A DNA stretch of 64,000 bases from Chlorokybus atmophyticus (taxonomy: Eukaryota > Plantae > Mesostigma and Chlorokybus algae). The stretch covers positions 175,446-239,445 of the forward strand of contig RHPI01003020.1 of NCBI GenBank assembly GCA_009103225.1. The letters run 5' to 3'. The notes under the pieces are model-generated. The model was not told where the DNA came from and did no database searches. It saw only the letters and a program-made list of their open reading frames with translations. Positions 30,169 to 64,000 of this stretch are shown here, piece by piece. Made by a program: the position numbers and the translations under genes. How positions within the stretch are numbered: position 1 is the first letter of the stretch; each line of letters opens with the position of its first letter.

Positions 30169-32002
30169 ATGCGTGGCGGCGGCGGTGGTGTGGGTGAGGG
30201 TGGCGGCGATGATCTCGTCGTCAGGGTGGCGGGGGTGGCCGGGAGGATCGTTTCGCAGTGTGCGCCGCTGGTTGCACATGCTTCCGTCGCCACCGCTGCT
30301 TTCGTGTCTACCCTGGGAGTCACACAGGTATGCATGGTTGCGTAACGTGAGCGGCGGAGCAAGCATTGATAAAAAGTCATTCATGCTTAGTGAGCTGAGT
30401 CTGTAGCAATGCCGGCAATAGGTCACCGCTGGAGCTCTTAGGGTATCATGCGCAACGCCCGTCCTGGGAACCGCCTTCGGCATTGCTGGCGTCGCCGCCG
30501 CCTCCGTTGCAGCTGGACAGGTGCGATGCGACAACTCTTTGCTTGCGCAGCTGGTTGCTGGTTAACTTACTGCCTGCTGGCCTATTTCAGGCTTCTCATG
30601 CATTCGGGGAGTGGCGAGAGAGCAAGCATTGGCCTCAACTGCGTGCTTATACATTCAAGCTGACCGTGGAGCGGATGGCTACGGATGCTATGCTCGGCGT
30701 CGCTATGTTTGCGGTGAGAATGCTGAAAGCGCCATGAACTGCATTGTACGGCAACCATAAAGAATGCCAAAACGTTGTGCACGTAAGCATGCTTTGTGCT
30801 CAAGCTGACGCTTGCTCTATTAGGTGCTGGGATGCAAGTACTCATCCATCCTGCCAAGTGATCTGCGGTTTCCTGGCGCACTAGCGCGTGTTTCAATTCC
30901 AGGTGAAGGATTGTCTTTGTAATGTGACTGGCTTTCACATTCTGAGTATTATAATATTGGAGTCTATATCGGAATACGCTTAGCAGATACCCGTCGGCTG
31001 ACAATGGCACCTTTCATTAGTGCAGGAGGCAGAAGGCGTCACCTATGCTGATAAACTGCGACGAGGAGTCCTGAGGGTGTTGTTTGAGCAGTATGGCTGC
31101 CATCTTTGCGGCATTCGCACAGGCCAAGTGTAAGTGCTCAATGCACCCAAGCAGCAATTTCCTTGTGGAGTTGCTGAGGCTGTGCATGCATTGACTGCGT
31201 GGTTTCAGTGTGGCAGACCACATGCCGCCCAACCTGTTTGTATATGGGTCCAAGTCCGAACCCAAGCTGGTTCGCTCTGTACGGAGAGGGAACAAGTGGT
31301 TCGTGCAATGGCGCAAACCTGCATTGCAAAGGTCAGCAGCATGGATAGATTGGCTGTGATATAGATGTGTATGTCCGTCACTGGTGTACCTCAACCAACT
31401 TCGCTGGCAGGTATTACCCAAGTTGCTTGAAGTGTTCTGGCATGCAGTCTGGTGCTGTCAAACTGAACATCCAGAAGCTCAGATTTCATACCTTTGGCCC
31501 CCAGGTGAGCAGTTTGCAAATCAAGCGTCGCTTATGACATTTACACAAATGCAATGGTTACTCGCAATCTTAGCTGAACATGTGTGTTTACTCTTAGCGG
31601 CGACTTGTCACCATTCCTGGAGTGCTGCTCGCTTTCCGTGACATTGGTAGCACGCGAAATGGCTCGGGCACATCAGAACATGACCGACCCGCCGACAAGC
31701 GCATCACCACACGTGTATCCGACATCACCAACACCATGCATCTACCGACTGTCCGTGCAGTGGACCGCCCGCTCTCTGGACAGTATCATGCTTTGCGCGA
31801 GCAGTATGACATTTTGCAGCAACTGCGGGCCTCAGAGGTGCAGCTAAGAGAGGAACTCAGGCGCTGCGATGCAGATGATGAGTTAGCGCGCGAGCTCAGT
31901 GCTGAGCTCGCAGTAGTTGTAGCTGAGAAAGGCAGAGTGAAGGCCAACATTAGCCAGTTAAGGAGACAGCACTCTGATGTTGGTCAGCCGACTGATCAGT
32001 AG
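30169..32002 (+). CDS. Uncharacterised protein: Gly/Ala-rich hydrophobic N-terminus, HNH-like Zn-nuclease motif, C-terminal coiled coil
   Basis: About eight GT-AG exons splice in frame to ..LRVSCATPVLGTAFGIAGVAAASVAAGQA..DAMLGVAMFAVLGCKYSSILPSDL..LFEQYGCHLCGIRTGQVVADHMPPN..QRYYPSCLKCSGMQSGAV.., with the stop at 32000-32002. Confidence 0.7.
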
Positions 32003-32309
32003 TGCTGGTCAGCGTAGATTTGGGCTGCCTGTTTGTGCTCTTTGCGCACACAACTGTCAGCTGTACAGATACAAACTATGGTGGACAAGTAATACTAACA
32101 TTTTATGTGATTTTGTCATGCAGGCAAGATGCTCTGGTGCTTGATCAGCAATGTATTGTGCTAGCTGCAAAGAACTGATGTGCTGCAATATTGCGACTGC
32201 CGTGGATGGCATGGTGGGTGCTGCCGCCGCCGCCTGGCCCCTCTCTCTCTATATATATATAACAAAAGGACAGCGCAGCCGCTTGGACAGGCCAGCAGCT
32301 GCTCATATC

Positions 32310-32499
32310 CCCTCTCTCCCTCTCTCCCTCTCCCCCTCTCTCTCCCTCTCCCTCCCTTGCGCTCGCGCTCGCTCTCGCGCTCGCGCTCGCGCTCGCTCTC
32401 GCTCTCGCTCTCGCTCTCGCGCTCGCTCTCGCGCTCGCTCTCGCTCTCGCGCTCGCTCTCGCGCTCGCTCTCGCTCGCTCTCTCTCTCTCTCGCTCGCG

Positions 32500-32547
<48 letters not shown>

Positions 32548-33320
32548 CTCTCTCTCGCTCGCGCTCTCTCTCTCTCGCTCGCGCGCTCTCTCTCTCTCGC
32601 TCGCGCGCTCTCTCTTGCTCGCGCTCGCGCGCTCTCCCTCTCTCTCTCTCTCTCCCTCTCCCTCTCCCTCTCCCTCTCCCTCTCCCTCTCCCTCGCTCTC
32701 TCGCTCTCTCGCTCTCTCGCTCTCTCGCTCTCTCGCTCTCTCTCGCTCTCTCTCCCTCTCTCTCCCTCTCCCTCTCCCTCTCCCTCTCTCCCTCTCTCTC
32801 GCTCGCTCTCTCGCTCTCGCTCTCGCTCTCGCTCTCGCTCTCGCTCTCGCTCTCGCTCTCGCTCTCGCTCTCGCTCTCGCTCTCGCTCTCGCTCTCGCTC
32901 TCGCTCTCGCTCTCGCTCTCGCTCTCGCTCTCGCTCTCGCTCTCGCTCTCGCTCTCGCTCTCGCTCTCGCTCTCGCTCTCGCTCTCGCTCTCGCTCTCGC
33001 TCTCGCTCTCCCTCTCCCTCTCCCTCTCGCTCTCGCTCTCGCTCTCGCTCTCGCTCTCGCTCTCGCTCTCGCTCTCGCTCTCGCTCTCGCTCTCGCTCTC
33101 GCTCTCGCTCTCGCTCTCGCTCTCGCTCTCGCGCTCGCTCGCGCTCTCGCGCTCTCTCGCTCGCTCGCGCTCCCTCGCTCGCTCGCTCTCTCGCTCTCTT
33201 GCTCGCTCTCTCGCGCTCTCGCGCTCTCTCGCTCTCTCGCTCTCTCTCGCTCTCTCGCTCACCCTCGCTCACCCTCGCTTGCTCGCTCGCTTGCTCGCTT
33301 GCTGTCTCGCACTCGCTCGC
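32310..33320. repeat. Compound CT/CTCTCG/CTCTCC microsatellite, about 1 kb
   Basis: Long (CTCTCG)n runs mixed with (CT)n, (CG)n and (CTCTCC)n; almost no A on the + strand. Confidence 0.97.
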
Positions 33321-34212
33321 TGTCCCCCTGTCCCCCTCTGCCCCGCTCCCCCGAGGTGGCTGATGTATAAAACGTGCTGAGCCACTACATTGCTGTAGCT
33401 GTTGCAGTGTAGTTGGCTGTGTGGTGGTGTATGATATTTGAAATGCAGCAATTGCGGCATGCGAACCACTAGCATAGCATGCGTGTGTAAGATACTGCAA
33501 CAGTACACATGTGTGCGTGCGCGCGAATGCATGTTGGCGCGTAGATGAGTGTGCCAATGTCTGAGTGATTGCCTGCTAATGGATACCACTGTTGCCACAT
33601 GTAGCGTTCAACAGGGGGGGGGGGTGTTTGTTTGTAACAGCGACTACGCGTTTGGAGACAAGTCTATCCCCCTCGCCGCCTTTGGCACTCCAAGTGCCTT
33701 CCTTGCACAAGCTGATGAGCAACGTATGCGCACCATGTGGCCCAACAACGGGTAATGCCTGCTAGCCGCTTCTTGAAACAGCTTCGGGCTTCTTGTACAT
33801 GCAACGGACTGCTCGTGGGCTCCAGCGTGCTTGGGATGTGGAGCTGTGAACGCGGGCCAACCATGGCCGTGTGCAAATTGCTGGCCAGCACCGCGATTGA
33901 CCCCTATACCTTGTCAGACGTTGCATGGTCTTGGTGTGAGGCCTGCGTGCTATCGCACATAGCTTGGTGATGCTAAATGGGATAGTGGTTGCTGGACGTG
34001 TTGGTATTGCTGCCGTAGCTGGCGTGTGCCGGGTTGTGGTTTGTGCAGCGTTTCAATACTGCAGCAATTGTTGTGCTCCTCAAGGCTGTCACTCACCAAG
34101 GGCCAGCAAGCACATGACACTTGCATAGGCATGATCAAGGTGGTCAAGTGTCGAGCTGTCAACTAGTTGTTGACAAGTTGGTTCGATTCGCCAACCACAA
34201 CCGCGCAAGACT

Positions 34213-48035: not shown

Positions 48036-48859
48036 CTTGAAAATGTTGTGCTGTACCTTCAAGGCAGAGACACCACCTTTGAACAGCAACATCTTGGTAC
48101 TGTAGTAGTACACATGACAAAAGCTTATGAAAGGCAACCTCGCCACGCACACACACAGACGCGCGTAAGCATGCATGTATGCATGCATGCATGCGTGCAC
48201 ATATGACAGGCAGGTGTGCTTCATAGCTTTACGGCATGCACGAGGGCATTTTGGATCCAATTCAGCGTCAGCGCTCAAAACGCTAACGCCCGACCGCGAT
48301 TAAGCTGAGCTTGGAGTAGTTTGCATGGCTGTGATTGTCGTCGGCGGTGGCCGGGGCAGCGACGGTGTTGGTGTCATGCCAGGAGAACGGAACAGCAACG
48401 ACTGCAGGAGGGGCGACGCTGCTGTTAGTGTTTGTTGGTCGGGCTGATTGTAGCCTCAGCTGAGCTTGTCTTGCTGCTTCAGTGGACAAGGCATGCATGT
48501 TGTGAAAATATCGTTGCTTAATCAGGCTCTGCAGCCTGCCTAGCTTTCAGCCTGCGAGTTGTGCACACATGTCGCTGCATACTGCTCGCCCAGTCATTTG
48601 TTTGCCAACCCTAATTGGGACGCACCAGAAGCAGTAGTCTGTTGCTGCAACACAACAACACTGGCTTGTGCAGGTACTTTTGGCTGCACTTGTAGGTGTA
48701 GGCTGTGAAACCATTGCGCGTGTCCCCTGTAGCCTCAGCAATGCTGCTAGGCTGTTTGATGCCAGTGACAGTTATGTTCTCAAGCAGAGAGCGCTGCATG
48801 CAGATGAATTGTGCACATGCACGTAGTGGTGACGCTTATCATAATCTGCCACCAGCACC

Positions 48860-49862
48860 ATGGCGGACTCGCTCAGTTCCGAAGTGAGCGAGTTCGATCC
48901 GTTCACAACAGCAAGCCAGGAAAGTGCAGCAAGCGTCTTGCAGCACACTCAAGAGTCTGCCAATGCACCCCACAAACCCGGTTGTTGTCGATCGTTCTCT
49001 GGTGGTTAAGGGCCAAGATGGACGACGCCAGTGGCAGGCAGGAGTTGCTTGCAGCCCGCATGGTTCCCGACTTCATAGCTGTCGTCAAAGAAGCTAAGTG
49101 CATCGAGCCCAAACTTGAGGTCGCTGAGTTTCTCTGCAACTTGGCGTCCTATGAAGACAGTCGCAGTGCCTTTCTGCCCGACAGTGTCCTGAATGATATC
49201 ATCCATGCTTGTGGCTTCCCTTGCCTAGTACAACTCGTGCAATCCAACTCCACGAAGGCGAAGATCGGTGCTCTGTACATGTTGAAACGGTTGTCCTGGA
49301 ACAACTCCAACCGTGTGTCTGAATTGGCGAGTCTGGGCAGCATCAAGCCTCTTGTGCAACAATTGGCCAGCAGCGATTCTATTGTGCAGACGGGTGCAAT
49401 GATTGTGTTGGCTAGCTTGGCACATAAGCGTGCGCTGCACAGGAGATTGTGCACAAGCTGGTGTCACTGCCCCTCCTTGCGCACTCCCTGCTGTGCGATA
49501 GGTCAAGTAGGCAGCAAGCACATGCTGCACGCACGCTTACGTTCCTGGCGGACAGAACTGCACACTGCCGTGACATGGCACACGCGGTGGGGGACGGTGT
49601 GAAGACATTGGTGGAGCGCTTGCAGCTGAATGACCACTCGTATAATGTGAAGTGGACGATGAGGTTGCAGGTGGCTGCGCTTTGCATCATGTCCGCATGC
49701 TGCGACAGGAAAGCCAGGCCTGCAATGGCATGCGACCTGGCTGGGGACGAAGCAGGCGCGGCCTTCAAGAAAAGGGTTAAAGCTTCAGTGAGAGACGTGG
49801 TTTGTTGCATGGGCTCCTTGAAGCGCCCCCGTGCAGCGGATGTTGACAAAGGTGCCGCTTGA
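48860..49862 (+). pseudogene. ARM-repeat gene copy A (frameshifted, internally deleted)
   Basis: Homologous to the 56103-57404 ORF (QTRLL..DDASGRQELL..LEVAEFLCNLASYED..IKPLVQQL). Frameshifts lie near 48970 and 49430-49450, and a large central block present in copies B and D is missing. It ends DVVCCMGSLKRPRAADVDKGAA*. Confidence 0.8.
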
Positions 49863-51588
49863 GCCCAATCTCCACCATGCGTTGTCAGACTACCAAGCAG
49901 CTTGCGACCCTTCTGTCAGCTACTTTGGTTGCGGTTGCCAACCATGTCAGTGTCAATCTGCACATGACTAATAGTGTACATAACTGTGGCATAGCTGGTA
50001 CTATGCCTGTGTGTCAACAGTACACGTCTGGCAACTACGAGTTGGATGTCCGTTTGGTCATCGTGTAACCCAGCTATTCTCGTTGTAGAGCAGTGCACTA
50101 GCTCTACCTACTAGAGCAGGAGCAGGTGTGAGCAGGAGCTCTACTTACTAGGTCATATTGTGAATGCAGGAGCTGGTGTGAGCAGGTGACAGGATGGTCG
50201 CACCGGTCCTCACATTCCTGTTCACAGATCATCATGATGTGGGAGAAAGGAGTGAATAGGGACAACATGCAAGGCACTGCAGTAAGTGAATGAATAAATC
50301 TTGAAGTCTGAGTTCATTCAATCAGCTGAAGTGCATTGCGCATGTGCAGCGTGTACAGGATATGCAAGGCGGTAATGCTAACAGGCAGAAGAGAGCAGCA
50401 AATTGCGCATAGCAGCAAACACGCACCTTGATGCTGCATACATGACCATCGGGCTAACTCTACCTTGCAATTGTACTCTGCCCCAACCAATCCCTATCAG
50501 GCATGCATGCATTCACGACAACTTTGTTGTTGAACCCTGGTTACCTGGGCCAGGGCTTGTGGTTAGCGGGCAGCCCATGGGCACGATCAATGAAGAAAGG
50601 GGGGGAGGGGGGGACATGAGCTATGCTATAGCTCATGTAGCTCAGTGAGCTACAAAGCCACCCAGTTACGCGCATGCGCACAGCACTTCACATAATCATG
50701 AATTAACGTATCCACGCATGCCTATGTGACATGTCGCTGAGTTACAAAGCTCCAACGTGGAGCCTTCAAGGCTCTGAAAGGAAGCCTTGGAGGAGTTGAA
50801 GAGTCGAAGCTTTGAGGGCTGAAGCAGAGACATGCATACGCGAGCTAAATCGCGATCCGTTACGCTCGACCGAGATCAAGCCTCGAAACGGTTTGCATGT
50901 GTGCTCGGGGGGGGGCTGTGCGTGCCGCAGTGTGGGCGGGAGCGGTGGCCTGGGCGACGCCGGTGGCGACGGCGGTGGCGGTGGCAGAGGGGAAGGCGGA
51001 GGCTAGTGTTTAGCAGCTGTTGTTTTGTTGGCAATGGTGGGTGGCTAGCTGTGCTTGTAACGGTGTGGAGGTTACACCAGCGGACAAGACCGCAACGACT
51101 GCAGGAGGGGCGACGCGCTGGCAACTGGCTGGTAGTGTTTTAGCCATGGCTACCAGGGCCTGGTACAGGCTGTCAGGCTGAGCGTCGTTTTGTGCTGCTA
51201 TTATTAAAAAAGGGCATGCATGTTGTGAAACTGTTGATGCTCGAGCCTTGAGCGGCAAGTTTGCAGCTGCCTAGCTTTCATCCCGCGAGTGGTGCATGTC
51301 GCTGCATGCAGCTCGCCCCTATGAATGCAAATCCTAGTTGGGAGGCTGCTGCATTGCACATAACCAATCAGAAGCTTGCTGTAGCAAAGACACTGTGCAG
51401 GTAGGCGTACTTCTTGCTGTGTTTGTAGGCTGCATCACACCACCACAATGTCGTCATTTGTAGCCTCGTGAATGCCGCTAAGCTGCTCCATGCTAGTGGC
51501 AATTGTGTTCTCAAGCAGTCCGTTGCATGCAGACAAACAGCGCACATGCACGCTAGCTGTGCCGCCTTCAGAGCCTGCCAGCAGAACC

Positions 51589-52988
51589 ATGGCGCAGATG
51601 CTCAGTTCATCAGTTCAACAATCCATGACAGTGCGAGCGCTCTTCCTCGATTGACGGGACACTGCACTGCACTGCTTGCGGCAAGAGGCATGCATGCCTC
51701 TTGCCGCAAGCAGTGCGCTCAGGAGGCTGCCAATACAATGGCACAAACCCGGCTGTTGTTGTTCGTTTTCCGGTGGTCAAGGTAGAAGCTTGAGGACTCT
51801 AGCGGCAGGCAAGAGTTGTTCAGAGCCTGTGTGGCTCCTGAATTACTCGCTGCTGTCAAGGAACTTGACTGCAACGAGCTCAAAGTTGAGGTCGCTGAGT
51901 TTGTCTGCAATCTGGCGTCCTATGAAGACAGCTGGAGCGCATATTTGCTAAGTACAGCCTTGGATGATATCAACCGTGCGTGTGACCTCCCTTGCCTTTT
52001 TCAGCTCGTGCAATCCAGCTGCACGAAGATCCAGGTGGGGGCACTACGCACGTGCTTGATCGGCTGTCCTGTGTAAACTCCTGCTGTGCAGGGAAGTATA
52101 TGAGTCTGGGCACCACAAAATCTCTTGTGCAAATGGCCAACAACGACTCTCATGTCCAGATGGGTGCGATGACTGTGTTGGGAAACATGGCACGTGATGA
52201 TGAGGCGGCTGCACAGAAGATGGCACAATCTGGAGCAGTGCCACTCAGCGGCTTACTTGACCCATCGCGCAACTCATGCTGCGCGATGGGTCAAGTAAGC
52301 CGCTGCAAGCGAGTGCTGCACACACTCTTCCGTTCCTAGCATGCACCACGGGTTACCAACGTGATATTGCACGCACGTTGCGGGACAGTGTGAAGACGTT
52401 GTTGGAGCGCTTACAGCCACACGAACACTCATCCAGTACTGTGTGGTCAACGTCTTCGTTTCTTCGCATACTGTCATTTGAGTCAAAAGTCAAAGCCCTT
52501 GAGATTGTTGATGCTGGCGCTGTTGAAGCTTCAGTCAAGCTGCTACAGACAGGCAACCAAACGGATGTCGAGTCCTCCCTAGGGTTATGGTACGTTTTGG
52601 CACCAGTGACCAATGGTGTTGCTATGAGAGTTGCCGAAGCTGGTGGGTTACAGCCAATCATACGGTTGATGCACTCCACAGACAAGAAATTGCAGTCTGA
52701 TGCGGGGTTTGTTTTGGACGCCATAGTCAACTCCTCTACCGTTGCAGACGATTTGCCTGTGCGCAACATGTTGGAGTCCAGGGATCACAAGCATCAGCTG
52801 GCGGCGCTTTGCATCATGTCTTCGTGCTGCAAAAACGAAAGGCCGCTGCAATGGCGCAGGACCTGGCTGGGCATGAAGCACGCGGAGCCTTTGAGGGAGA
52901 CGAGATATCTTCAGTGAAAGACGTGGTTCGTTGCATGGGCTCTCTGAAGCGCCCTCGTGCAGCAGATGACGATGATTGTGCCGCTTGA
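51589..52988 (+). pseudogene. ARM-repeat gene copy B (in-frame stops and several frameshifts)
   Basis: Pieces in different frames (51816-52076, 51992-52339, 52276-52917) align end to end with copy D. There is an in-frame TAG near 51783, and the shifted end reads DVVRCMGSLKRPRAADDDDCAA*. Confidence 0.85.
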
Positions 52989-53164
52989 GCGCCATCTCCG
53001 CTACGCGTTATTAGACTACTGAGCAACTTGCAAGTTTCTGTCATCGGCGGCCATGCTATTTCGGTTGCCAATGCTGTCAGTTTCCCAATTATGTATTGTG
53101 CCTGATAGGCACTAGCCCTCAGGCTGTACATTACTAATACTTGTCTGGTGGTCATTGGGTGTCG

Positions 53165-54096
53165 CGTGACACCCCGCACCGTGCATCTGACTTGATGAGT
53201 CTGGGCAGTGTAGAGCCTTTTGTGCAGCAACTGACCAGTAGCGACGCGCTTGTCCAATTGCGAGCGCTGGTGGTATTGGACAAGCGCGACTGAATATAAA
53301 TACAAAACGACTGAGTATGTTGCCGTTGCTGCACCGAGTGCTGCGCAAGCTGGCACAGTACTTCCCATCGTGCAACTCCTGCTGTCCAATCCATCAACAA
53401 GGCCGCTGCAGGCGTCTGCTGCACGGACGCTTACGGTCCTGGCATTCAATGCTGCCTATCGACGTGACGTTGCACTTGCGTTGGGAGACAGTGTGAAGAG
53501 TTTGATTCAGCGTTTGCAATTGAGAAAGTGGTTGCCCATCCAACAGGCAGTACTTTATAGCAACATTGCTTTGGTGCCTGGCGTTTGATAAAGCCACAGC
53601 ATTGAAGATTCTTGAAGCTGGCGGTTAAATCGAAGCTTCAGTCACCCTCTTGAGAAGAGGCAACCAGAGCGTGATTGCATCATCATTGGGCCTACTGAGC
53701 ACTCTGGCATGCTTTGACCATAGCAGGGCGACGCGAATGGCTGAAGCTGGTGGCTTACGAGCGGCTATGAGGTTCGTGCAGTCCACTGACCAAACGGTGC
53801 AGCTTGTGGCCAAGCTTGTTTTGGACAACACAGCAGCCTCTGCGGCTGCTATTACCTTTGCCAGCCCTGTACTAGGCATGCTGTATTCAAGGGATCAACC
53901 GCAGCAGTTGGCTGCGCTCAACATACTATCCTCTTGCTGCAAGTCGCGGGCAGCTGCAGTGGTGGAAGACCTAGCTGGGGCTGAGGCAGTCAATCCCCTC
54001 AAGGAATGGTTTCAGCCTCCTGTGTCGGAAGTGATTCGCTGCATGGGCTCCAGGAAGCGCCCCCGCACAGCCGATGCCAGCGGAGCTGCCGGTTGA
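53165..54096 (+). pseudogene. ARM-repeat gene copy C (5'-truncated, frameshifted)
   Basis: Fragments PIVQLLLSNPSTRPLQASAARTLTVLA and RMAEAGGLRAAMRFVQS..QQLAALNILSSCCK..EVIRCMGSRKRPRTAD. It begins immediately after the 3' flank of copy B, with no leader. Confidence 0.82.
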
Positions 54097-54699
54097 GCTC
54101 TATGATTGCCCTTGCGCCGTCGGACTATCAAGCACCAAGCAAGTCAGTCTTCAACCACACTGTGGTTGCCAGCGGTGTTGGTGTCCACTTCTGTATACAG
54201 TTAGCGCTTGTTCTGCATGTAGCTACTTGTTGAGCTGCGAGGAGTATTGGTTCGTGTAACTCAAGGCAGCTGCTCTTGACCAATCTGGTTGCAACCTGTT
54301 GTCAGCACTAACCCGAAGCTTAGACACCAGAGCTTGTACTCGTCTAAATCTGTACATTAATACAGACATAGTACGCACGTGGCGATTCATGTTCATGATA
54401 AATTTTGTCTCTGTTGCATTGACGAGTGTCCAGCACCAGGAGGACTCGACTATGGGTGCACACCATGTATGATGGGCTTCGTGCTGAAACCCAGTGCCAC
54501 TGGTTAGACCAGTGATTACTCACCGTCGATATGCACCAATGCACAGGGCCGCGCTCATAGTTCAAGCGCCATACCTAGCTACGCACACCATAGCATCCGA
54601 CACCATCAGACACGCTTAGCACACGCACACGCCCTATACATGCGCAGTTCGTTGCAGTTTGCATGGTATGTACATACCCTCGACGTTTTGTTGTACACA

Positions 54700-55560
54700 C
54701 CCTGAAGTGCGACAGCGGCAGCCATTGTGGGTCGAGGGTCTGGGAGTGGCGGCGGCGGCCGGGAGTGGAGGCGGAAGGGAGGAGGGCGGGGGAGTCCTCG
54801 TCGCTGTTGCTGCTGTTGCCATGCTAGCCGACAGCTACTGACAGCAGCCCTTGCGGGCAAGTGATCGCAACTGCATGTACTGACTTGCATGTCTAGAGGG
54901 GTGCTAGCCTTAGCGTAGAGTAGTGAAGTAGTTGTGGTAGCCCGGTGGTAAACATGAATTAAGCAGAGTAATGGTAGGCGTGTGCTGCTGTGTTTACAAA
55001 GCACGCAATGTGGTGCATGTGAACACGCATTCATGCACAGTCATAGTCAACATGCAGGCAAGCACAGTCATTTGTATTTCACCACCGGGCTATACAAGTA
55101 CTTACTTATCTTCACTACTTCCCCAACCCGTTAGGCATGCTTGTTAGCAGTTGTCATTACCTGCCCACAGGGCCGTTTGTGCTGGCATGTTGGTCATTGC
55201 ATGCACACTTGTATCACGCATTTACTGTACACCCTGCACACCCACCTCGCGGGCACCGCGTGCTCACTACAGCGCCACTGAACACCCTCCTCACCACCAC
55301 GACGCTCGACCACATGGCCCGTGGTCGCCCTCTAGCTTCACATGCCAGCGCCGCCGTCAACGGGGTCGCTCGCCGGGGCTCCCCAGCACGGCACAGCCGC
55401 CACCGCCGCAGCACTGCGGAGGAGCCGCACCGGGCTCCAGCAGTGCCTGCGCCCTGCTGCAGTGCGCACGCCACGCGCTGCCAACAATGGCGATAAAGCT
55501 GCTGAAGTAGTGCACGTGCAGCCCTCGCAACTGCACCACCACACGCAAATACCCGTGGTC
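54700..55560. repeat. Two inward-facing copies of the TAGCCCGGTGGT dispersed repeat
   Basis: Cores at 54938-54949 (+) and 55081-55092 (-). Each is preceded by an alignable G/T/A-rich stretch and a GC-rich block. Confidence 0.6.
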
Positions 55561-56102
55561 AACCACATGCCAGAACACTGTGTGGCACTGTCAGCAGCAA
55601 TACCACTGCCTGGTTGTACCAATCTGCACATATGCGTATGTCTTTACTGCCTCTGCTTTATAAGCAGAGGCAGTAAAGAAGCAGAGTCAACCCTATACAG
55701 GCATCCGATGCATGAGTCATGCATGTGCAGAACACTGTGATTCACCTTTTGTACAGAAAAGGCAACTTGTTCTGAAAACAGCACAGTCTCTAGTGTCTAG
55801 CAAGAGCACCTTACTCATGCTAGTGACTTGCAGCTTTACTGATGAAAGAGTAGCTGGCTGAGGTACCCAGACATGACTCTCAGCAGCGCGACTCGGACTT
55901 ATTGGACAAGTATTTCTTTTGTAAAGATCCATATTGCTGATGCACACTTATTACTTTCAGGCAAGAATCGAGTCATGAAGATACCCCTACTGTGGGCAAC
56001 CGCAGCATGGGTCAGCATGAGTCAGGGTTAGCTTGGTGGAGACATGACTTGCTTGTCGCTGTGTAGGCCGACAGCGCAAGATGCAGATGCGGCTCCAGCA
56101 GC

Positions 56103-57404
56103 TCAATCGCTGGCGTTTGCTTCTCGGGGGCGCTTTCTGATACGCATGCAGCGAACCACATCTTTCACAAAGGGTCTGGCTCCATTATCAAAAACATAAC
56201 CTGCTCCATCTCCAGCTAGATCTGTTGCAACTTCAACCGCCTTGTGCTTGCAGCATGATGACAGGATGCGAAGCGCCGCCAGATGCTGCTCGTAATCCTC
56301 TGACTCCAGCATGTTGCGCACGCATGCATGAGTTGAAGAGGTAGCAGAGTCTACTATGACGTCTAGAACACGCCCAGCCAAGTCCTGAACATATGAGTTT
56401 GAGGATTGCAGCAACCTTGCGAGCGCCTGTACCCCACCTGCTCTGGCAACTCGCATCGCAGTACCACTGTTTATGCTCGCTAAAGCCCGCAGCATACCCA
56501 ATGTTGATGTAACAACATAGTGCCACCCTGGTGACCACTGGTCTGTCTCTAGAAGCCTGATCGTGGCCTCAATACCGCCAGCATCAACAATTCTGAGCGC
56601 TGTCAATTCTTCATCTGCCAGGTCTTGGAGCAAAAGTGCTACAGTCGCATGGAAGTAATCATCTGAATGCAAATGCTCCACCAGAGCCTCTACATCATCC
56701 CCCAAGGCGTTTGCAATGTTACGTCTGCAAGCGGTAATCAATGCCAGGACCCTCAGCGTGCATGCAGCGCCCACTTGGACCGACCTTGACTTACTGATCA
56801 TTAGAAGCTGCACAAGGGGTGGTATTGCACCAGCGTCCGCAACTTCCTGTGCAGCCACGCCAGCACATGACGAGAGCAGCGAGATAATAATAACAGCCAG
56901 ATCATTCGCGTTACGCGTTTCCATGCAATACTCTTCATTCGCAGCCATGGCGTCACCAATGACCAGTTGATGCACAAGAGGCTTTATGCCGCCCGCACGT
57001 ACTATGTCACGTACGTGACATGGCTTGAGAGAAAGCTGGGCAAGCACGCACATAGCCCCCACCTTGACCTTTTCGCAATCGGATTGAAGGAGCTGTACCC
57101 AAAGTGGGAAGCCCGCAATGACATCCGCCTGGACTGTATTGGGGGTGAAGGCGCTCTGACTGTCTGTGTAGTATGCCAACTTGCAGACTAAGTCAAGGAC
57201 TTCAGTCTTGCGCTCTTCACAGCTGATCTCCTTTACAGCACCCAGTAAATCAGGGACCACGCCGGCACTGAGCATCTCCTTTCTGCCCTCAGGATGGTCA
57301 ACTTTGTCCCTTAACGATCCGAGGATGAAGGCCATAAGCCTCGTTTGGGACCCGTTCGCTGCCTGCTGAGCATGCTGTAAGCCGCTGGCTGCAGTGTCTC
57401 TCAC
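56103..57404 (-). CDS. ARM-repeat protein copy D; the only uninterrupted ORF of the cluster
   Basis: 433 open codons with armadillo-type repeats (AGGIKPLVHQL, AGAIPPLVQLL, DAGGIEATIRLL, AGGVQALARLL) and C-terminal RKRPR. The ORF-track start is GTG; the first in-frame ATG is 57335, and an upstream ATG at 57460 is out of frame unless spliced. Confidence 0.7.
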   Translation of the reverse strand: MRDTAASGLQHAQQAANGSQTRLMAFILGSLRDKVDHPEGRKEMLSAGVVPDLLGAVKEISCEERKTEVLDLVCKLAYYTDSQSAFTPNTVQADVIAGFPLWVQLLQSDCEKVKVGAMCVLAQLSLKPCHVRDIVRAGGIKPLVHQLVIGDAMAANEEYCMETRNANDLAVIIISLLSSCAGVAAQEVADAGAIPPLVQLLMISKSRSVQVGAACTLRVLALITACRRNIANALGDDVEALVEHLHSDDYFHATVALLLQDLADEELTALRIVDAGGIEATIRLLETDQWSPGWHYVVTSTLGMLRALASINSGTAMRVARAGGVQALARLLQSSNSYVQDLAGRVLDVIVDSATSSTHACVRNMLESEDYEQHLAALRILSSCCKHKAVEVATDLAGDGAGYVFDNGARPFVKDVVRCMRIRKRPREANASD

Positions 57405-58360
57405 AGAAGAAGGGCGCTCGCCCTGTTATGGCTATCTGACAAACCAACCTGTTGCGCCATGCTTGTGATTGTGTGCTAGCTCTGGTAGACGGCAGCACGA
57501 AGGCTGATTGCATGCGGCAGACTGCTTTGCACACTTTGTCAGTTGATTGAACTGCTGAGGCGGCCTTGACGTGGCACACTCAATGCGAACACTGCTGGTT
57601 TAACGTCAACACCTACAAACACCGCAAGAACAGTCACAAGTAGTACACGCACATGCCAGCTTCTGCATGTACTACTTGCACAAGCTGCGTGTATTGCAAG
57701 CTTTCACAGCAACAAGCTACTGCCTCCTTCCGCTATATACAGCAGCAGCCTCCCAACTAGGGTCTACACCAACAGCGCCAGCAGCATGCACCGTTGTTGC
57801 AGCACATGACGGCAAAGACAGCTACGACCCTAGCTGAGCTTCAACCACGCAACAAACAGGCCCTCTCCGCCGAAGCAGCGCAACAGTTAGCTTCTGCGGC
57901 CACCCTCAGCGTAACAGGGACACCCACACCAACACTCTCACCTGCAATTACCAGCAACTGGGCGGTGCCCGTCTAGCTTTGTGACGACCTTTTCACCTCC
58001 GCCGCTCGTTGCAGAGCCCGTCACAAGCACGGGCAGACAAGTATCACCTGCCGCCAATCAACCAGCCAGCTCTCCCAACCGCCACCTCCGCCGCCGCTGC
58101 CGCCCGAGCCACCGCTCCCGCCGCTTGGTGCATGTGCATGCAAACGGTACAAGGTGACGCAAGCTTACAACTCGACGCATGCTTGGCAGCGTTGGTGGCG
58201 TTGAAGCTGACTTGCGTGGGTACTTGAATGATTGTGCAATTGTTGCTGCCCTCTGGATGTTGCAATCTTAATTTACATTAATCTTGCTGTGCACAAAGGG
58301 CCCCCCCCCCCTTTGGTGTGCACTTCAAAGTTCTTGTAGTTGTGTTGTGCTTATTTATAG

Positions 58361-58550
58361 GTAAGCGTTGCTGGGCAACAGCTCGAGTGTCACAACGGTC
58401 GCATTGCTTTTGCCTGCTTGCTCGTAATTTATGCGGTGGAGGCTCAGGACAACATCTGATCGGAAGTGCCTCCCCATAGCTGGTGATTACGTTGAAGGCC
58501 AGCGCTACAGCACTGTATCTGTCAAGGCATGTTCATCACACTTTGTTTCA
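58361..58550 (+). pseudogene. Duplicated terminal exon of DNMT2 (non-functional fragment)
   Basis: ag|gtaagcgttgctgggcaacagctcgagtgtcacaacggtcgcattgct aligns with ag|gtatgcgctgttgggcaacagcttgagcgtcacggtagtcgcgttgct at 47910 onward. The Tyr codon has become TAA and there is a frameshift. Similarity continues into the 3' UTR. Confidence 0.85.
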
Positions 58551-59834
58551 GCTGTCCTTAACATGTCAGTGGAACAGTCTAGCCTACCGTCGGGCCAAGC
58601 CAGCGCAACAAAGTGCCCACACCAGAGAGCATTGTGCCTCTGCCGATTACAGCCATCAAGTCTTGTTCGGACACGCGTGCTGCTGCAGCAGCTGCTTGAA
58701 GACAATGTAACGGTCTGTGACATGGTGTAGTTTGTTCAGAGCTGCGGACTATGTGAGTTAAGTTAGCGTAGGGAGCTTAGCTATGCTATCTCTTCATGTC
58801 CTTTTGTATGTGTGGTGCATGTCACAGACCGTTACACACGATGTGCACCCCCTAGCCGAGACACCTCCTAGTGCTAGGCATCACTATGTGAGTCTGTGCA
58901 AACCATATGAACATTGTCACATGCGCAGGGTGGCGCCTGCATGCCCAAAACGCTATTAATGGCCACATCACCGCCTGGTTATCCCACTTACAGCAGATTT
59001 GTTCATGCGGTAGAGGAGAAGCAGCATGGACATATATCACCACAACCGTAGACAACAGGTCAAGTACGACATATACTGCCTATGTACATATTAATAGGGT
59101 TTGCGCATGTGGTGCTGCTCCGTTGCTATTTGGTGTCACATCGTGGCATGCGTAGTGGTTCATGTTAAAGGCCGCTGCACATTATGAGCACCCTTCAGGC
59201 AAGGTAGCCATCGGCTTGGTGCGACTGCCTGTAGCAAGCAATTAGCAGTATGCTGGAACACGTGTCCATGTGTATGGATTGTTCCAGATGGTTTGATTGG
59301 CGGTCAATGTGGGCACCCATCAACCATACAGCGACAGTCACCGCATCCGGCAGGCAGCGCCTGCATATCTGGTATGCTGTTGATAGCATGACTCCTAGGC
59401 CTGGTAGGGTTCTTGATAACTCACAAGTTTAATGCACAATCTACCAGCAAAAACGTAAAGGGGTCCACCCACACGTCAAAGTTAGCGTTGCTTGTCTGCT
59501 GGTTACTTGCAATACGGCACATAGCTGCCTACCCAGTACACATTGGCCTTATGTACACTCTCTGTTTTATTCTGTTTGAGTAACGCAAAAAATCAAGCAC
59601 ATCACAAGCGCGCCGACACTAAGTAAGAACCAGCTGGCTTACATGACGATGAATGCAAGTGTCGCTGACTCTTAACAGCTAGACAAATGCTACTCAGGCA
59701 CTGCTTACAACGTTGAACACCACTGTACGCTTGTGAAAAAACGGCGCCCGAGTGCAGCATAGCTTGCATATGGCATGTCACTTGCCTGCTGCAACAACAA
59801 CAATTGCAACATGTTGACAGGTAAGCATGAAGTC

Positions 59835-61110
59835 TCAATTGGCAGCCTGAGGGTCGTTGGCATCTACTGTGCGGAGGCGCTTCCGGGAGTCACTCATGCA
59901 GCGCATAACATCTCCCAATGAGGGTTGAGCCCCTTCTTCAATAACATTGCCTGCATCATTCATCGCAAAGTCTTGTGCATTGGCCTTGCGCTTGCAGCAA
60001 CAAGACGTGATTCAGAGCGCAGCCAGCTGCTGCTTGTAATCCTCTGACTCCCACATGTTGCGCATGATAGGCTCAATAACCACGGTAGTTGAGCTTATCA
60101 TGACGTGAAGGATATACTCAAGAATACGCTCAGCAGCAGATTGAACACTTGGTTGTTGCATTGAATGAGCCTCGTGAGCGCCTTTCTGCCACTGGCTTCA
60201 GCAACTCTTTTTGTAATGGAGTTGTTGCTTGGCACCATGCGACTCAAAGTACATAAAGATGAACAGCGTACCCTCTTTCTATCTGACTCCAGACACTTGA
60301 CCAAAGCTTCAATGCAATCAACATCCACGATGTCAAGCACCGCTACCTCATCTTTTGCCAGGTTGGTAAGCAACTCCACCTCAAACCAGCACATTTGGTT
60401 GTCATCAGATTGCGAATGCCCGACCAGTGCCTGCACACCACCTTTCGACGCCTGTGCAATGTCCTGTCGGCAATGAGGATTGTACGACATGTTCTTCAAC
60501 GCGGGTGCAGCCTTCATTTGCACCCTGCTTGTTATATTATTGGACACATTGGACAGCAGAAGTTGCAGGGTAGGTGGTACTACCGCCAGCTCGCACGACT
60601 GCCCATGCGGACACGGCATCCACTGCCAAAGTACTTAACAAACTCAGTGCACACTGCTGGCCAGTGGATTCGTTGGTGGCCAGTTGTCCCACGGCTTGCT
60701 TCAGGTAGCTGCAAGTCACTATGTTACGATAGTCTTCACGACAGTGAATTCTGTCAGCATCAGAGCCTTCATTGAACATCCAGTCATCCAAACTCCTAGC
60801 GCCCACCTTGACCTCTCCGCAGCTGAACTGTACTTCAGATGTGACGAAAGCGGGAAGCAGAGCGCCAGAAAGTGAACGACATCCCTCTCAACTGTGCCAC
60901 GCAGAACATGGGCTGTCTTCGTAGGACGCCAGTTTGCAAAAAAACTCAAGGAGCGCCTGTGCATGCATCGCAATCGACAGAGACCATAATCCTGTTGATA
61001 GAGATCAGGGCGGAGACAACACCCGCATTGAGCAACTCCTGACTGCCGCTGGAGTCATCTGCCTTGGCCCTTAGCTGGCAAAGAAGATGCACTAGCAACC
61101 TAGCCTTGGC
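59835..61110 (-). pseudogene. ARM-repeat gene copy E (frameshifts and premature stop)
   Basis: Pieces ARLLVHLLCQLRAKADDSSGSQELLNAGVV, EFFCKLASYED, GGVQALVGHSQSD..DCIEALVKCL, and RNMWESEDYKQQLAAL*ITSCC..DVMRCMSDSRKRLRTVD. Confidence 0.82.
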
Positions 61111-63059
61111 ACCCTGGCCAGTCTCTGGGGCATGCAAGTTGCTTGCTGCGATGTGCATTAAGTGGACAAGGATGATGGCACTCTCAGGGCTTGTTGATGA
61201 GCAAATGTGCCATTAACTTGCTCGTAGGCTGTGGAAGCTGCTGCTGGTGTTACTGCCTGTAAAGGACAAGTCAACGACATGCACGCTGCTGTCGTATAAT
61301 CGTCCAGCTGACATTGTTTTTAAAAATGCGTGGTATTGGCGTAAGAGCATGCCACTGCATGGTAGCATTGACACTGTACCTCCAACCAGCACAAGCGGAA
61401 GTATGCAAAAGATAGGCAAAGATACTCTGATCACTATGGCCCAGTGGCAACATTTGTTGTGCTCCTAGCTGTATACACAAGCAAGCCGTTTGACCCAGAG
61501 TTCAAAGCCGACACGCAGTGTGAAGGGCAGTGTCGTGCTATAGGAAAGGATAATAAGGGACATCTTGCTGACGATGATCAACTCCTCAACGTGACTACTC
61601 TCAATAAAAGAACAGCATGCTTGGCTAACGTAAGCACCCTCAAACTCATGGAGACCTAGCCTGCAACCTTACCAGCAGCGGTTGCTAGCAACCACATTGC
61701 AAGCCGGTCGCTCCACCACGCACGCCGGTGACCATCACAGACACACGCAAACCACCAACATTCGGCGACTGACGGACAGCTTCCCCAATCGCCACCACCT
61801 TCCCTGCTCCCGCCCCCTCCCCTGCCGCCTAGGGCACCGCTCTCGCCAACACTGCCGCCTGTCAGGCTTATAGTCACTCCGCTAAGCACACATGCAAAGC
61901 GGTTGAACTTGATTTTGGTCGAGCGTGAACGGGTTTACAACCGGCCCCGGATTGATTCAAGCTTGCTTTGGAGCTGACTGCCTGTCTTTTCAGGGTTGTG
62001 CAAGCAGACAAGTGAATTGCAGTTTGCGTGTATGCGCGCTATACGATATATGGCATGCTGTCAATTCGTGTTTGCCTTCGCTTGTTGACAACGATGAGAG
62101 AGACCGAATGCTCTTGCCAACGTGCCCGCTAATCTTTTGTCTATGCTTGACAAGCATAGCCAAAGCCGCGGGGTGGGGGGGTGGTGTGGGGGGTTGGGAG
62201 GTATGTGTGACTAGCCTTGATGTTCTCAAATGACTTTGATATTAATACGTCCATCAACACTTGGCACTCCGGAAGTTCATACTTCAAAACCCATGTACAA
62301 ATGGCCCGCTGGTTCATATGCACTTTCTTCGCTATTGCACAACAGCCTATCCATGCACGCCACCGCATACTCACAATACACACAGTATGCTATCTTGTAT
62401 ACACATTGCCATACGCACACACTCTACCCTACACCATCACACAGTGCCACGTCTTCTCGTCGTCGTCGCACACGTACACACGCGGTGTGAGCGTGGTGAC
62501 GCAGTCCCCCCCCCNNNNNNNNNNNNNNNNNNNNNNNNNNNNNNNNNNNNNNNNNNNNNNNNNNNNNNNNNNNNNNNNNNNNNNNNNNNNNNNNNNNNNN
62601 TCCCCCCCCCTCCCCCCCCCCCCCCCGGGCGCTGCGTCACCACGCTCACACTGTCGCCAATGCTGCCATCACCGCGTTCACCTCCATTGTCAGCTAAGTT
62701 CCTCGCATTGGCTCCCAACCCGACTCCGCTGCAACCGCCGCCGCTTCCTGCTCGTGCCAGTGCCTGCCGTTGCTGTAACACCGCCACAAAGCATGCACCG
62801 CCATAAAGGCACTTAGACGACGTACATGCAGCACCGGCATCTGCACCCGGCGTTCCACTGCAGCAACTGTTTGAATGCGATGTGGAAGGCAATTGCGTGG
62901 CTGTCTCTGCTGTGCTGTTGGCAGTTGTATATATAGAACCGCTCTTCACAAGTTGGACAGCATGGCGGCATTGACACGGTTCTCCACAGGAACAGTGCTT
63001 TAAAAGCTACAACCACAGCGGCAAACATCACACCCACGAAGTGGACATGGACAAGCACA

Positions 63060-63900
63060 TCTTCTCTCTTACTCTCTTATGCTCACATCCACAATCTATC
63101 AGTTCCTGCAGCTGTACACGGAAGCAGCCTCGCAACTGCGACTTGCACTGACAAACCAGAGCAGCATGCAGCATCCATTGCGCCACTTGACGTCGATGAC
63201 AGGCAGCTTCTGCGTTACCTCAGCATCAGTTCGCAAGATAACCCTTGAAATATGCATGCTCTCTCCGCTTAAGCAACAGCAAGAGCAGTACGACACGTGT
63301 AGCTGCCGTCAGACTGACGGGGGACATTCTCACCGAAACCCTGCACCAGTTGCCAGCACGGCGCCCCTCTCGCAGTCGCTTCTGTTCCGCTTCTGTTCCT
63401 CCCAACCTCGCACCACAAACACCGTCACCGGCTCAGCCAAACAGCCACTTATCCAAGCAACCAAACGCCCCGCTTCCCTAACGCCCCCTCGCCCGCCACC
63501 ACCGCTACCGCTGCTCTGGCCGTCCCGTACTCTGCCGCTCACGTCACTCACATGCACATCGGTTCGAGCTTGATCTCAGTCGGGCGCGAACGGGTTTTCA
63601 ATTGGCCCCAGACGGACCCGAATGCAGTGCTTGGTTTGGAGGTCGACTACCTGTCTTGTCAAGCTTGTGTCACAAGTTGTGTGTAAGTTGTGTGCAAAGA
63701 AGCTGTGGAGGTTGCAACGTGCGTGCGTGCATGCGAGCGCGTGTTCTTCAATTGCAATTGTGTATGTGTTCACTTGTTGAGAAAACAAGCGTCAACTTCA
63801 AGTGTGGAGTAACCCAATGCTCTTGGCAACATGCCCATTGTTAACTTTGTTATATGCTTGACAAGCATAGCTGGAGCCTGCGCGTGCACCCACTGACCTG
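63060..63900 (-). repeat. Leader/promoter-only sixth unit of the ARM cluster (no coding remnant seen)
   Basis: 63545-63870 aligns with 61880-62160, and the reverse complement of 63100-63290 aligns with the copy B leader at 51200-51350. Confidence 0.65.
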
Positions 63901-64000
63901 TTGATTACATGCTTGACAAGCATGGCTTAAGCGTGCACGCGGGAGAAGGAGGCCCCCAACACACACACACTTTGCCCCGAAGGGTGTGTGTGTTTTGGGG

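Follow-up and report, generated by a model that had tools for sequence, protein, structure and literature searches.

A lineage-restricted cluster of armadillo-repeat genes in Chlorokybus atmophyticus, probably decayed to a single open copy

The Chlorokybus atmophyticus scaffold Chrsp290 was analyzed over a stretch of 64 kb (the window; all positions refer to it), which harbors a cluster of paralogous armadillo (ARM) repeat genes spanning 48.3–63.9 kb (∼15 kb). Five ARM bodies and no others were located in the whole window by tblastn with the open reading frame (ORF) of copy D, by phmmer against all six-frame pieces and by frameshift-aware protein-to-DNA alignment, and the three methods agreed. 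Units A, B, and C lie on the plus strand, and D, E, and a leader-only remnant, F, lie on the minus strand. An initial annotation, made from the sequence alone, had described five ARM units and a leader-only sixth, and this count was recovered; the starts it gave for A (48860) and B (51589) are the conserved ATG codons. The best overall explanation of the locus, to which we assign a probability of about 0.6, is that of a lineage-restricted ARM-only family which was duplicated, remained open for long and recently decayed to D. Tandem and inverted duplications, in which the promoter/leader, the coding body, and the 3′ flank were copied together as a whole unit, would have enlarged the family. The paralogues would have stayed open during their divergence to 34–54% identity, four would then have been disabled fairly recently, and D would be the one surviving gene.

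Frameshift-aware alignment to D revealed 15 frameshifts and three in-frame stops across A, B, C, and E, together with two large deletions and a 5′ truncation. Each of these four copies carries three to six disabling lesions in 300–400 codons, whereas D carries none over 433 codons, in agreement with the initial annotation, in which four copies had multiple frameshifts or stops and only D was open. In A–C, the disabling lesions were found at short inverted repeats that are perfect or nearly so (51669–51716, 52231–52320, 53245–53288, 49439–49464, and 48864–48896). The N-terminal region of B contains a perfect 48-nt palindrome (51669–51716), and the B frameshift at 52261 was caused by a 17-nt insertion identical to the reverse complement of the coding DNA just downstream (arms 52231–52320). 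A frameshift in C is associated with perfect 14-nt inverted arms (53245–53288), and the cluster of frameshifts in A with a quasi-palindrome (49439–49464). Exact inverted repeats of at least 10 nt within 40 nt numbered four in the region 48300–54200 as compared with 0.28 in shuffled sequences, an enrichment of ∼14-fold (none of 100 shuffles reached four), and none were present in D or E. These lesions look like the outcome of template-switch (quasi-palindrome) mutagenesis and not like sequencing noise.

It could be argued that the frameshifts arose in sequencing or assembly and that several copies are really intact, as one of them (A, 48970) lies in a run of four Cs and the scaffold contains gaps and long homopolymer tracts. 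However, the remaining 14 of the 15 frameshift sites lie outside homopolymers, and the lesions also include the three stops, a ∼100-residue deletion in A, the 5′ truncation of C, and templated inverted insertions of 17–48 nt. Lesions of these kinds are absent from D, which, like the neighboring genes, shows a long clean ORF. Owing to these features, the lesions of A, B, C, and E are real mutations and not assembly errors, and an error origin, named with the initial annotation as a possible refutation, is very unlikely. The interpretation of the frameshifts as small introns was rejected as well. The public model of B, which is built in this manner, attains its 313 amino acids only because the lesions are spliced away; a conserved ARM repeat is lost in the process, and the conserved tail is translated out of frame. 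Hence, the B model represents the handling of a pseudogene by a gene predictor.

Table 1. Features of the ARM-repeat cluster (positions in the 64-kb window).
Feature	Position	Strand	Details
Unit A, pseudogene	48384–49954	+	Leader 48384–48859; ATG 48860; ARM body 48917–49841; shared 3′ flank to 49954
Lesions of A	Frameshifts 48970, 49428, 49451, 49464	+	Deletion of ∼100 residues (D 259–373) and ∼11 more
Unit B, pseudogene (JGI Chlat1 4595 = Chrsp290S04335)	50857–53084	+	Leader 50857–51588; ATG 51589; body 51711–52976; 3′ flank to 53084
Lesions of B	Stop 51783; frameshifts 52049, 52261, 52839	+	Palindromic insertions 51669–51716 and 52231–52320
Unit C, 5′-truncated pseudogene	53174–54153	+	Body 53174–54081 (D residues 128–432); no leader; 3′ flank to 54153
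Lesions of C	Frameshifts 53253, 53537, 53557; stop 53626	+	First 127 residues and leader absent
Unit D, open copy (JGI Chlat1 4596 = Chrsp290S04356)	56037–58122	−	ORF 57404–56103; ARM body 57404–56106; conserved ATG 57460
Flanks of D	Leader islands up to 58122; 3′ flank 56102–56037	−	From DNA similarity
Most conserved part of the family	56106–56342	−	D residues ∼355–433: last ARM repeat, SSCCK motif, disordered tail VRCMxxxKRPRxxD
Unit E, pseudogene	59853–62166	−	Body 61149–59853; ATG 61213; leader to 62166
Lesions of E	Frameshifts 60965, 60904, 60833, 60583, 60146; stop 60014	−	From frameshift-aware alignment
Assembly gap	62515–62600, in 62485–62651		Inside poly-C tract; 25-nt inverted arms 62485–62509 and 62627–62651
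Unit F, leader-only remnant	63083–63932	−	Collinear with leaders of E, B, A, and D; no ATG region, no ARM body

The copies share 34–54% identity at the protein level, A and B being the closest pair and E the most distant, and 65–75% at the DNA level; the high divergence noted earlier was thereby confirmed. The similarity extends beyond the coding regions. Between leaders it reaches 370–730 bp upstream of the ATG, and common 3′ flanks of 66–110 bp are present. The DNA similarity of A and B starts at 48392/48490 (370–470 bp upstream of the ATG) and ends 110 bp past the stop, while B, D, E, and F are connected by shorter leader islands and 3′ flanks. As the leaders and 3′ flanks were duplicated along with the bodies, whole gene units were amplified as DNA, as the initial annotation had held. 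Leader islands (48384–48424, 51089–51128, and 63394–63346; 50857–50956, 61932–61826, and 63669–63549) are short non-coding segments showing 74–96% identity between units whose coding DNA is 65–70% identical. One conserved leader island has the core GCAACGACTGCAGGAGGGGCGACGC. The conserved leader islands are candidates for shared promoter or 5′-untranslated region elements. Analysis with Tandem Repeats Finder revealed no tandem repeats.

The timing of the decay was evaluated from the stops. In these codons a substitution creates a stop with a probability of 0.037, and three stops in 4218 aligned nt correspond to a neutral decay K of ∼0.02 (0.004–0.055). The synonymous divergence (dS) between the copies is 0.5–1.2, near saturation, and K amounts to a few percent of it. 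Judging from this difference, the copies appear to have been maintained as open frames through most of the time since they separated and to have been disabled recently, at roughly similar times. If D were neutral, it would have escaped all stops with a probability of 4e-6 at K = 0.25; at K = 0.02, the probability that D escaped both stops and frameshifts, of which the other copies have ∼4 per unit, is below 0.01. Very probably, selection has preserved D. Codon-position identity followed the order second > first > third position in all pairs, although the protein-guided alignment inflates the values of the first and second positions. Overall, the family seems to have expanded long ago, to have been retained for a long time while its proteins diverged fast, and to have decayed to one gene only recently.

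Birth-and-death multigene families follow the model of Nei and Rooney. The present cluster resembles such families in its gain of copies through duplication, their independent divergence without homogenization and their loss through pseudogenization; its hallmarks are paralogues derived from DNA duplication, five bodies and one leader remnant, four disabled copies, and the absence of concerted evolution. It differs in showing the death phase only, with no young duplicates. The turnover invoked in the initial annotation was not rapid, the copies being old (dS 0.5–1.2) and having been open for most of that time.

Some observations weigh against a functional D as the survivor of the family. The ratio of non-synonymous to synonymous divergence (dN/dS, ω) is high while dS is near saturation, and constraint on D is indicated by its open frame only. 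The public model of D has only 129 amino acids with ARM sequence spliced out, the annotation pipeline having missed the full-length gene, and the conserved ATG of D is out of frame unless a putative intron exists. The model fragment and the out-of-frame ATG would equally fit the possibility that all six units are dead and D has merely not yet been hit. This is quite unlikely, however, in view of the three to six lesions in each of the other four copies against none in the 433 codons of D: at ∼4 frameshifts per unit, the chance of finding none is ∼0.02, with a further factor of 0.37 for finding no stop. Besides, in-frame splice sites rescue the ATG of D.

The conserved ATG lies in the context CATGGC in A (48860), B (51589), and D (57460) and AATGGC in E (61213). 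It is in frame with the body in A, whereas in B and D its frame meets a shared TGA after ∼20 codons. D has a phase-0 donor, CAG/GTTGGT, at 57448 and phase-0 acceptors at 57375, 57366, and 57363, each of which would join the ATG to the body. Comparable sites are found in B (phase-0 donor at 51631, phase-0 acceptors at 51711 and 51714), and A has a donor at the homologous position 48884. A short 5′ intron of 74–86 nt in D is therefore considered likely on the strength of these sites. The D protein of ∼420 residues would be encoded by a short ATG exon and, beyond the intron, one large exon. The description of the coding regions as essentially intronless thus holds for the bodies but not strictly for the gene, as the ATG of D needs the intron. 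The JGI model of D uses the splice from 57448 to 57363 and also splices out ARM sequence at GTTGGA sites; beyond its 5′ splice, the 129-amino-acid model is not credible as the main product of D. All three donors of this model read GTTGG(T/A), two of them located inside the ARM motif V(K/Q)/VGA. The ARM consensus itself therefore makes donor-like sites, at which gene prediction for ARM genes of the Chlorokybus genome may go wrong. For the searches and folding described below, the single-exon ORF of D (433 codons and a stop) was used.

The relatives of the family were sought in annotated proteomes and protein collections, the DNA-level search for copies having covered the 64-kb window. An exhaustive HMMER search of 1.84 billion protein representatives gave 146 matches at E ≤ 1e-3, of which two were at E ≤ 1e-30; both are the cluster's own gene models (EukProt EP00898), with exons identical to D and B. 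The next 20 matches, with 28–36% identity, come from chlorophytes, a glaucophyte, amoebae, and metagenomes and are long ARM proteins, and no Chlorokybus protein from outside the cluster was present among the 22 best matches. A word-based protein search with D returned weak Vac8-type matches only (E ∼1e-5) and no family member, and a search of the ESM Atlas returned generic ARM clusters only. By sequence comparison, the family appears to have no close relative that could be detected, either within the annotated proteome of Chlorokybus or beyond it, which upholds the earlier view of a lineage-specific family. The literature search turned up no work on either ARM families of Chlorokybus or birth-and-death clusters of ARM genes.

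The surroundings of the units are ordinary. The neighboring genes encode DUF3689, ThiF, and DSPc proteins in clean long ORFs. A Pfam search of the spacer ORFs yielded no credible domain, the sole match being UNC119_bdg (E 0.094; 12.7 bits, below the cut-off of 27), and neither a partner gene nor a transposon or viral domain was detected in the cluster by Pfam searches of spacer ORFs and neighbors. These data also bear on the idea that the cluster is foreign DNA, such as endogenized giant-virus or transposon cargo. Intronless bodies and the lack of close cellular relatives would suit a foreign source, as would the distant matches, some of which are ARM ORFs of great length and without introns on metagenome contigs. 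However, the GC content of the cluster and its GC content by codon position equal those of the host genes, the base composition of D by codon position matching that of its neighbors; moreover, the spacers lack viral or transposon domains and no terminal repeats bound the cluster. A foreign origin was rejected on the basis of this host-like composition and is regarded as extremely unlikely.

The initial annotation had likened the family to immune, self/non-self, or conflict genes, an idea that implies diversifying selection on the ARM groove and explains the pseudogenes as by-products of fast birth-and-death. This is consistent with ω values of 0.4–0.9 in frames that were long open, with the slightly lower conservation of the H3 helices than of the H2 helices (0.37 vs. 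0.47), and with the orphan status of the family. However, ω was obtained from pairwise comparisons only, for which three methods disagree, and it is unreliable because dS is near saturation. The nominal difference between H3 and H2 is small. In addition, no immune-type domain was found in the units or spacers, nor was a partner gene or hypervariable face. The duplicates are old (dS at least 0.5), young copies are absent, and the family is shrinking to one gene instead of turning over. A conflict role is hence unlikely. We consider it quite unlikely, too, that the copies were fast-evolving nuclear ARM binders, each tuned to its own target (a virus, a transposon, or a mating-type factor), which selection long kept open during the divergence of their surfaces and which were abandoned together once the targets vanished, leaving D as the last sensor or adaptor; were this true, it would be an ARM-only recognition family without a known counterpart in streptophytes. 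On the whole, DNA-level duplication, divergence, one open copy beside four dead ones, and lineage restriction stand from the initial annotation, while rapid turnover does not and the immune or conflict analogy is without direct support.

Pfam analysis of D identified Arm (PF00514; 69.6 bits, cut-off 20.6; E 1.6e-19) and only ARM/HEAT-type domains, none of another kind. The AlphaFold model of D (predicted local distance difference test score, pLDDT, 81; predicted template modeling score 0.71) contains 28 helices arranged as an all-helical solenoid of approximately nine repeats, with the last decapeptide disordered. Foldseek assigned this model to ARM solenoids with a probability of 1.00 and template modeling (TM) scores of 0.55–0.68. 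Both in sequence and in fold, the best matches of D were consensus-designed ARM proteins, followed by Vac8, beta-catenin, and PF16/SPAG6. The designed proteins OR497 and dArmRP gave the best values overall (sequence E 1e-21; Foldseek E 8e-13), which places the repeats of D near the ARM consensus. These designed proteins, however, are engineered to bind peptides and carry an Asn/Trp ladder, whereas D has three Trp residues and, by eye, mostly not Asn at the ladder position. The best natural match is Vac8 (sequence E 2e-9; TM 0.63–0.68), which dominates the word-search matches and, like D, has approximately nine canonical three-helix ARM repeats. The two differ in that identity is 16–29%, in the absence from D of the Vac8-type N-terminal Gly2 and Cys acylation motif, the protein beginning with MAQQ (conserved ATG) or MAFILG (first Met in the ORF), and in the C-terminal SSCCK...VRCMxxxKRPR tail, which is D's own. 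In contrast to the plant U-box ARM ligases (PUB), the cluster units have no U-box or other N-terminal domain: there was no U-box match in D by Pfam, ARM_PUB scored 20.6 bits (below the cut-off of 33), and no domain was found in the leaders. The importin-beta-binding (IBB) domain of importin-alpha gave no Pfam match in D at E ≤ 1, and importin-alpha itself matched D at E ∼1e-3 only.

Conservation among the paralogues is highest toward the C-terminus, with identities of 0.60 at residues 361–390 and 0.61 at residues 421–433 (D numbering) against 0.19–0.47 elsewhere. The conserved stretch has the motif QLAALxIxSSCCK...DLAG...VRCMxxxKRPRxxD. The tail KRPR is kept in four of the five copies and is KRLR in E; pLDDT is below 50 in this part. 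Monopartite nuclear localization signals follow the pattern K-K/R-x-K/R, which K-R-P-R fits, and the tail looks like such a signal. It would bring the D protein into the nucleus, where the solenoid would bind a partner protein. We infer that D is probably a nuclear ARM scaffold that binds its partner via the groove.

Chlorokybus is placed near the base of the streptophytes, and from its lineage-specific families one can learn which inventions the early relatives of land plants made and later gave up. The locus offers a clean, small case of long-held paralogues decaying at about one time and leaving the survivor D, and in it genes were killed by templated palindromic insertions, which form an unusual mutational signature. 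In its present state the locus opens no major question, and the immune analogy is unsupported.

The assembly gap between E and F was evaluated for its effect on the units. The nearest ARM homology found by phmmer and tblastn over the window lies more than ∼350 bp from the gap (62515–62600). The similarity of the E leader ends at 62166, and that of the F leader ends at ∼63083–62950, at a distance of at least ∼350 bp from the gap. The gap is non-coding DNA between the E leader and F and touches no unit; owing to the absence of ARM homology near it, continuity across the gap affects no unit or frame. Nor can the gap account for F lacking a body, as the homology of F fades ∼350 bp or more before it. 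F may be the remnant of a unit or else a duplicated leader upstream of E, and the cluster may continue past the window end at 64000. The gap lies in a poly-C tract with more than 30 Cs between 25-nt inverted arms, and the sequencing probably failed there because of a hairpin with a poly-C loop at 62485–62651.

A 39-nt near-perfect palindrome (92%) was observed at 55641–55679, in the spacer between the inward-facing blocks and near the flip in orientation. Outside the cluster, the 2-kb block 32001–34000 shows a GC content of 0.60, a GC skew of −0.28, and an AT skew of −0.48. Both of its strands carry long ORFs that overlap (32145–33557), and the block is probably low-complexity or simple-repeat DNA.

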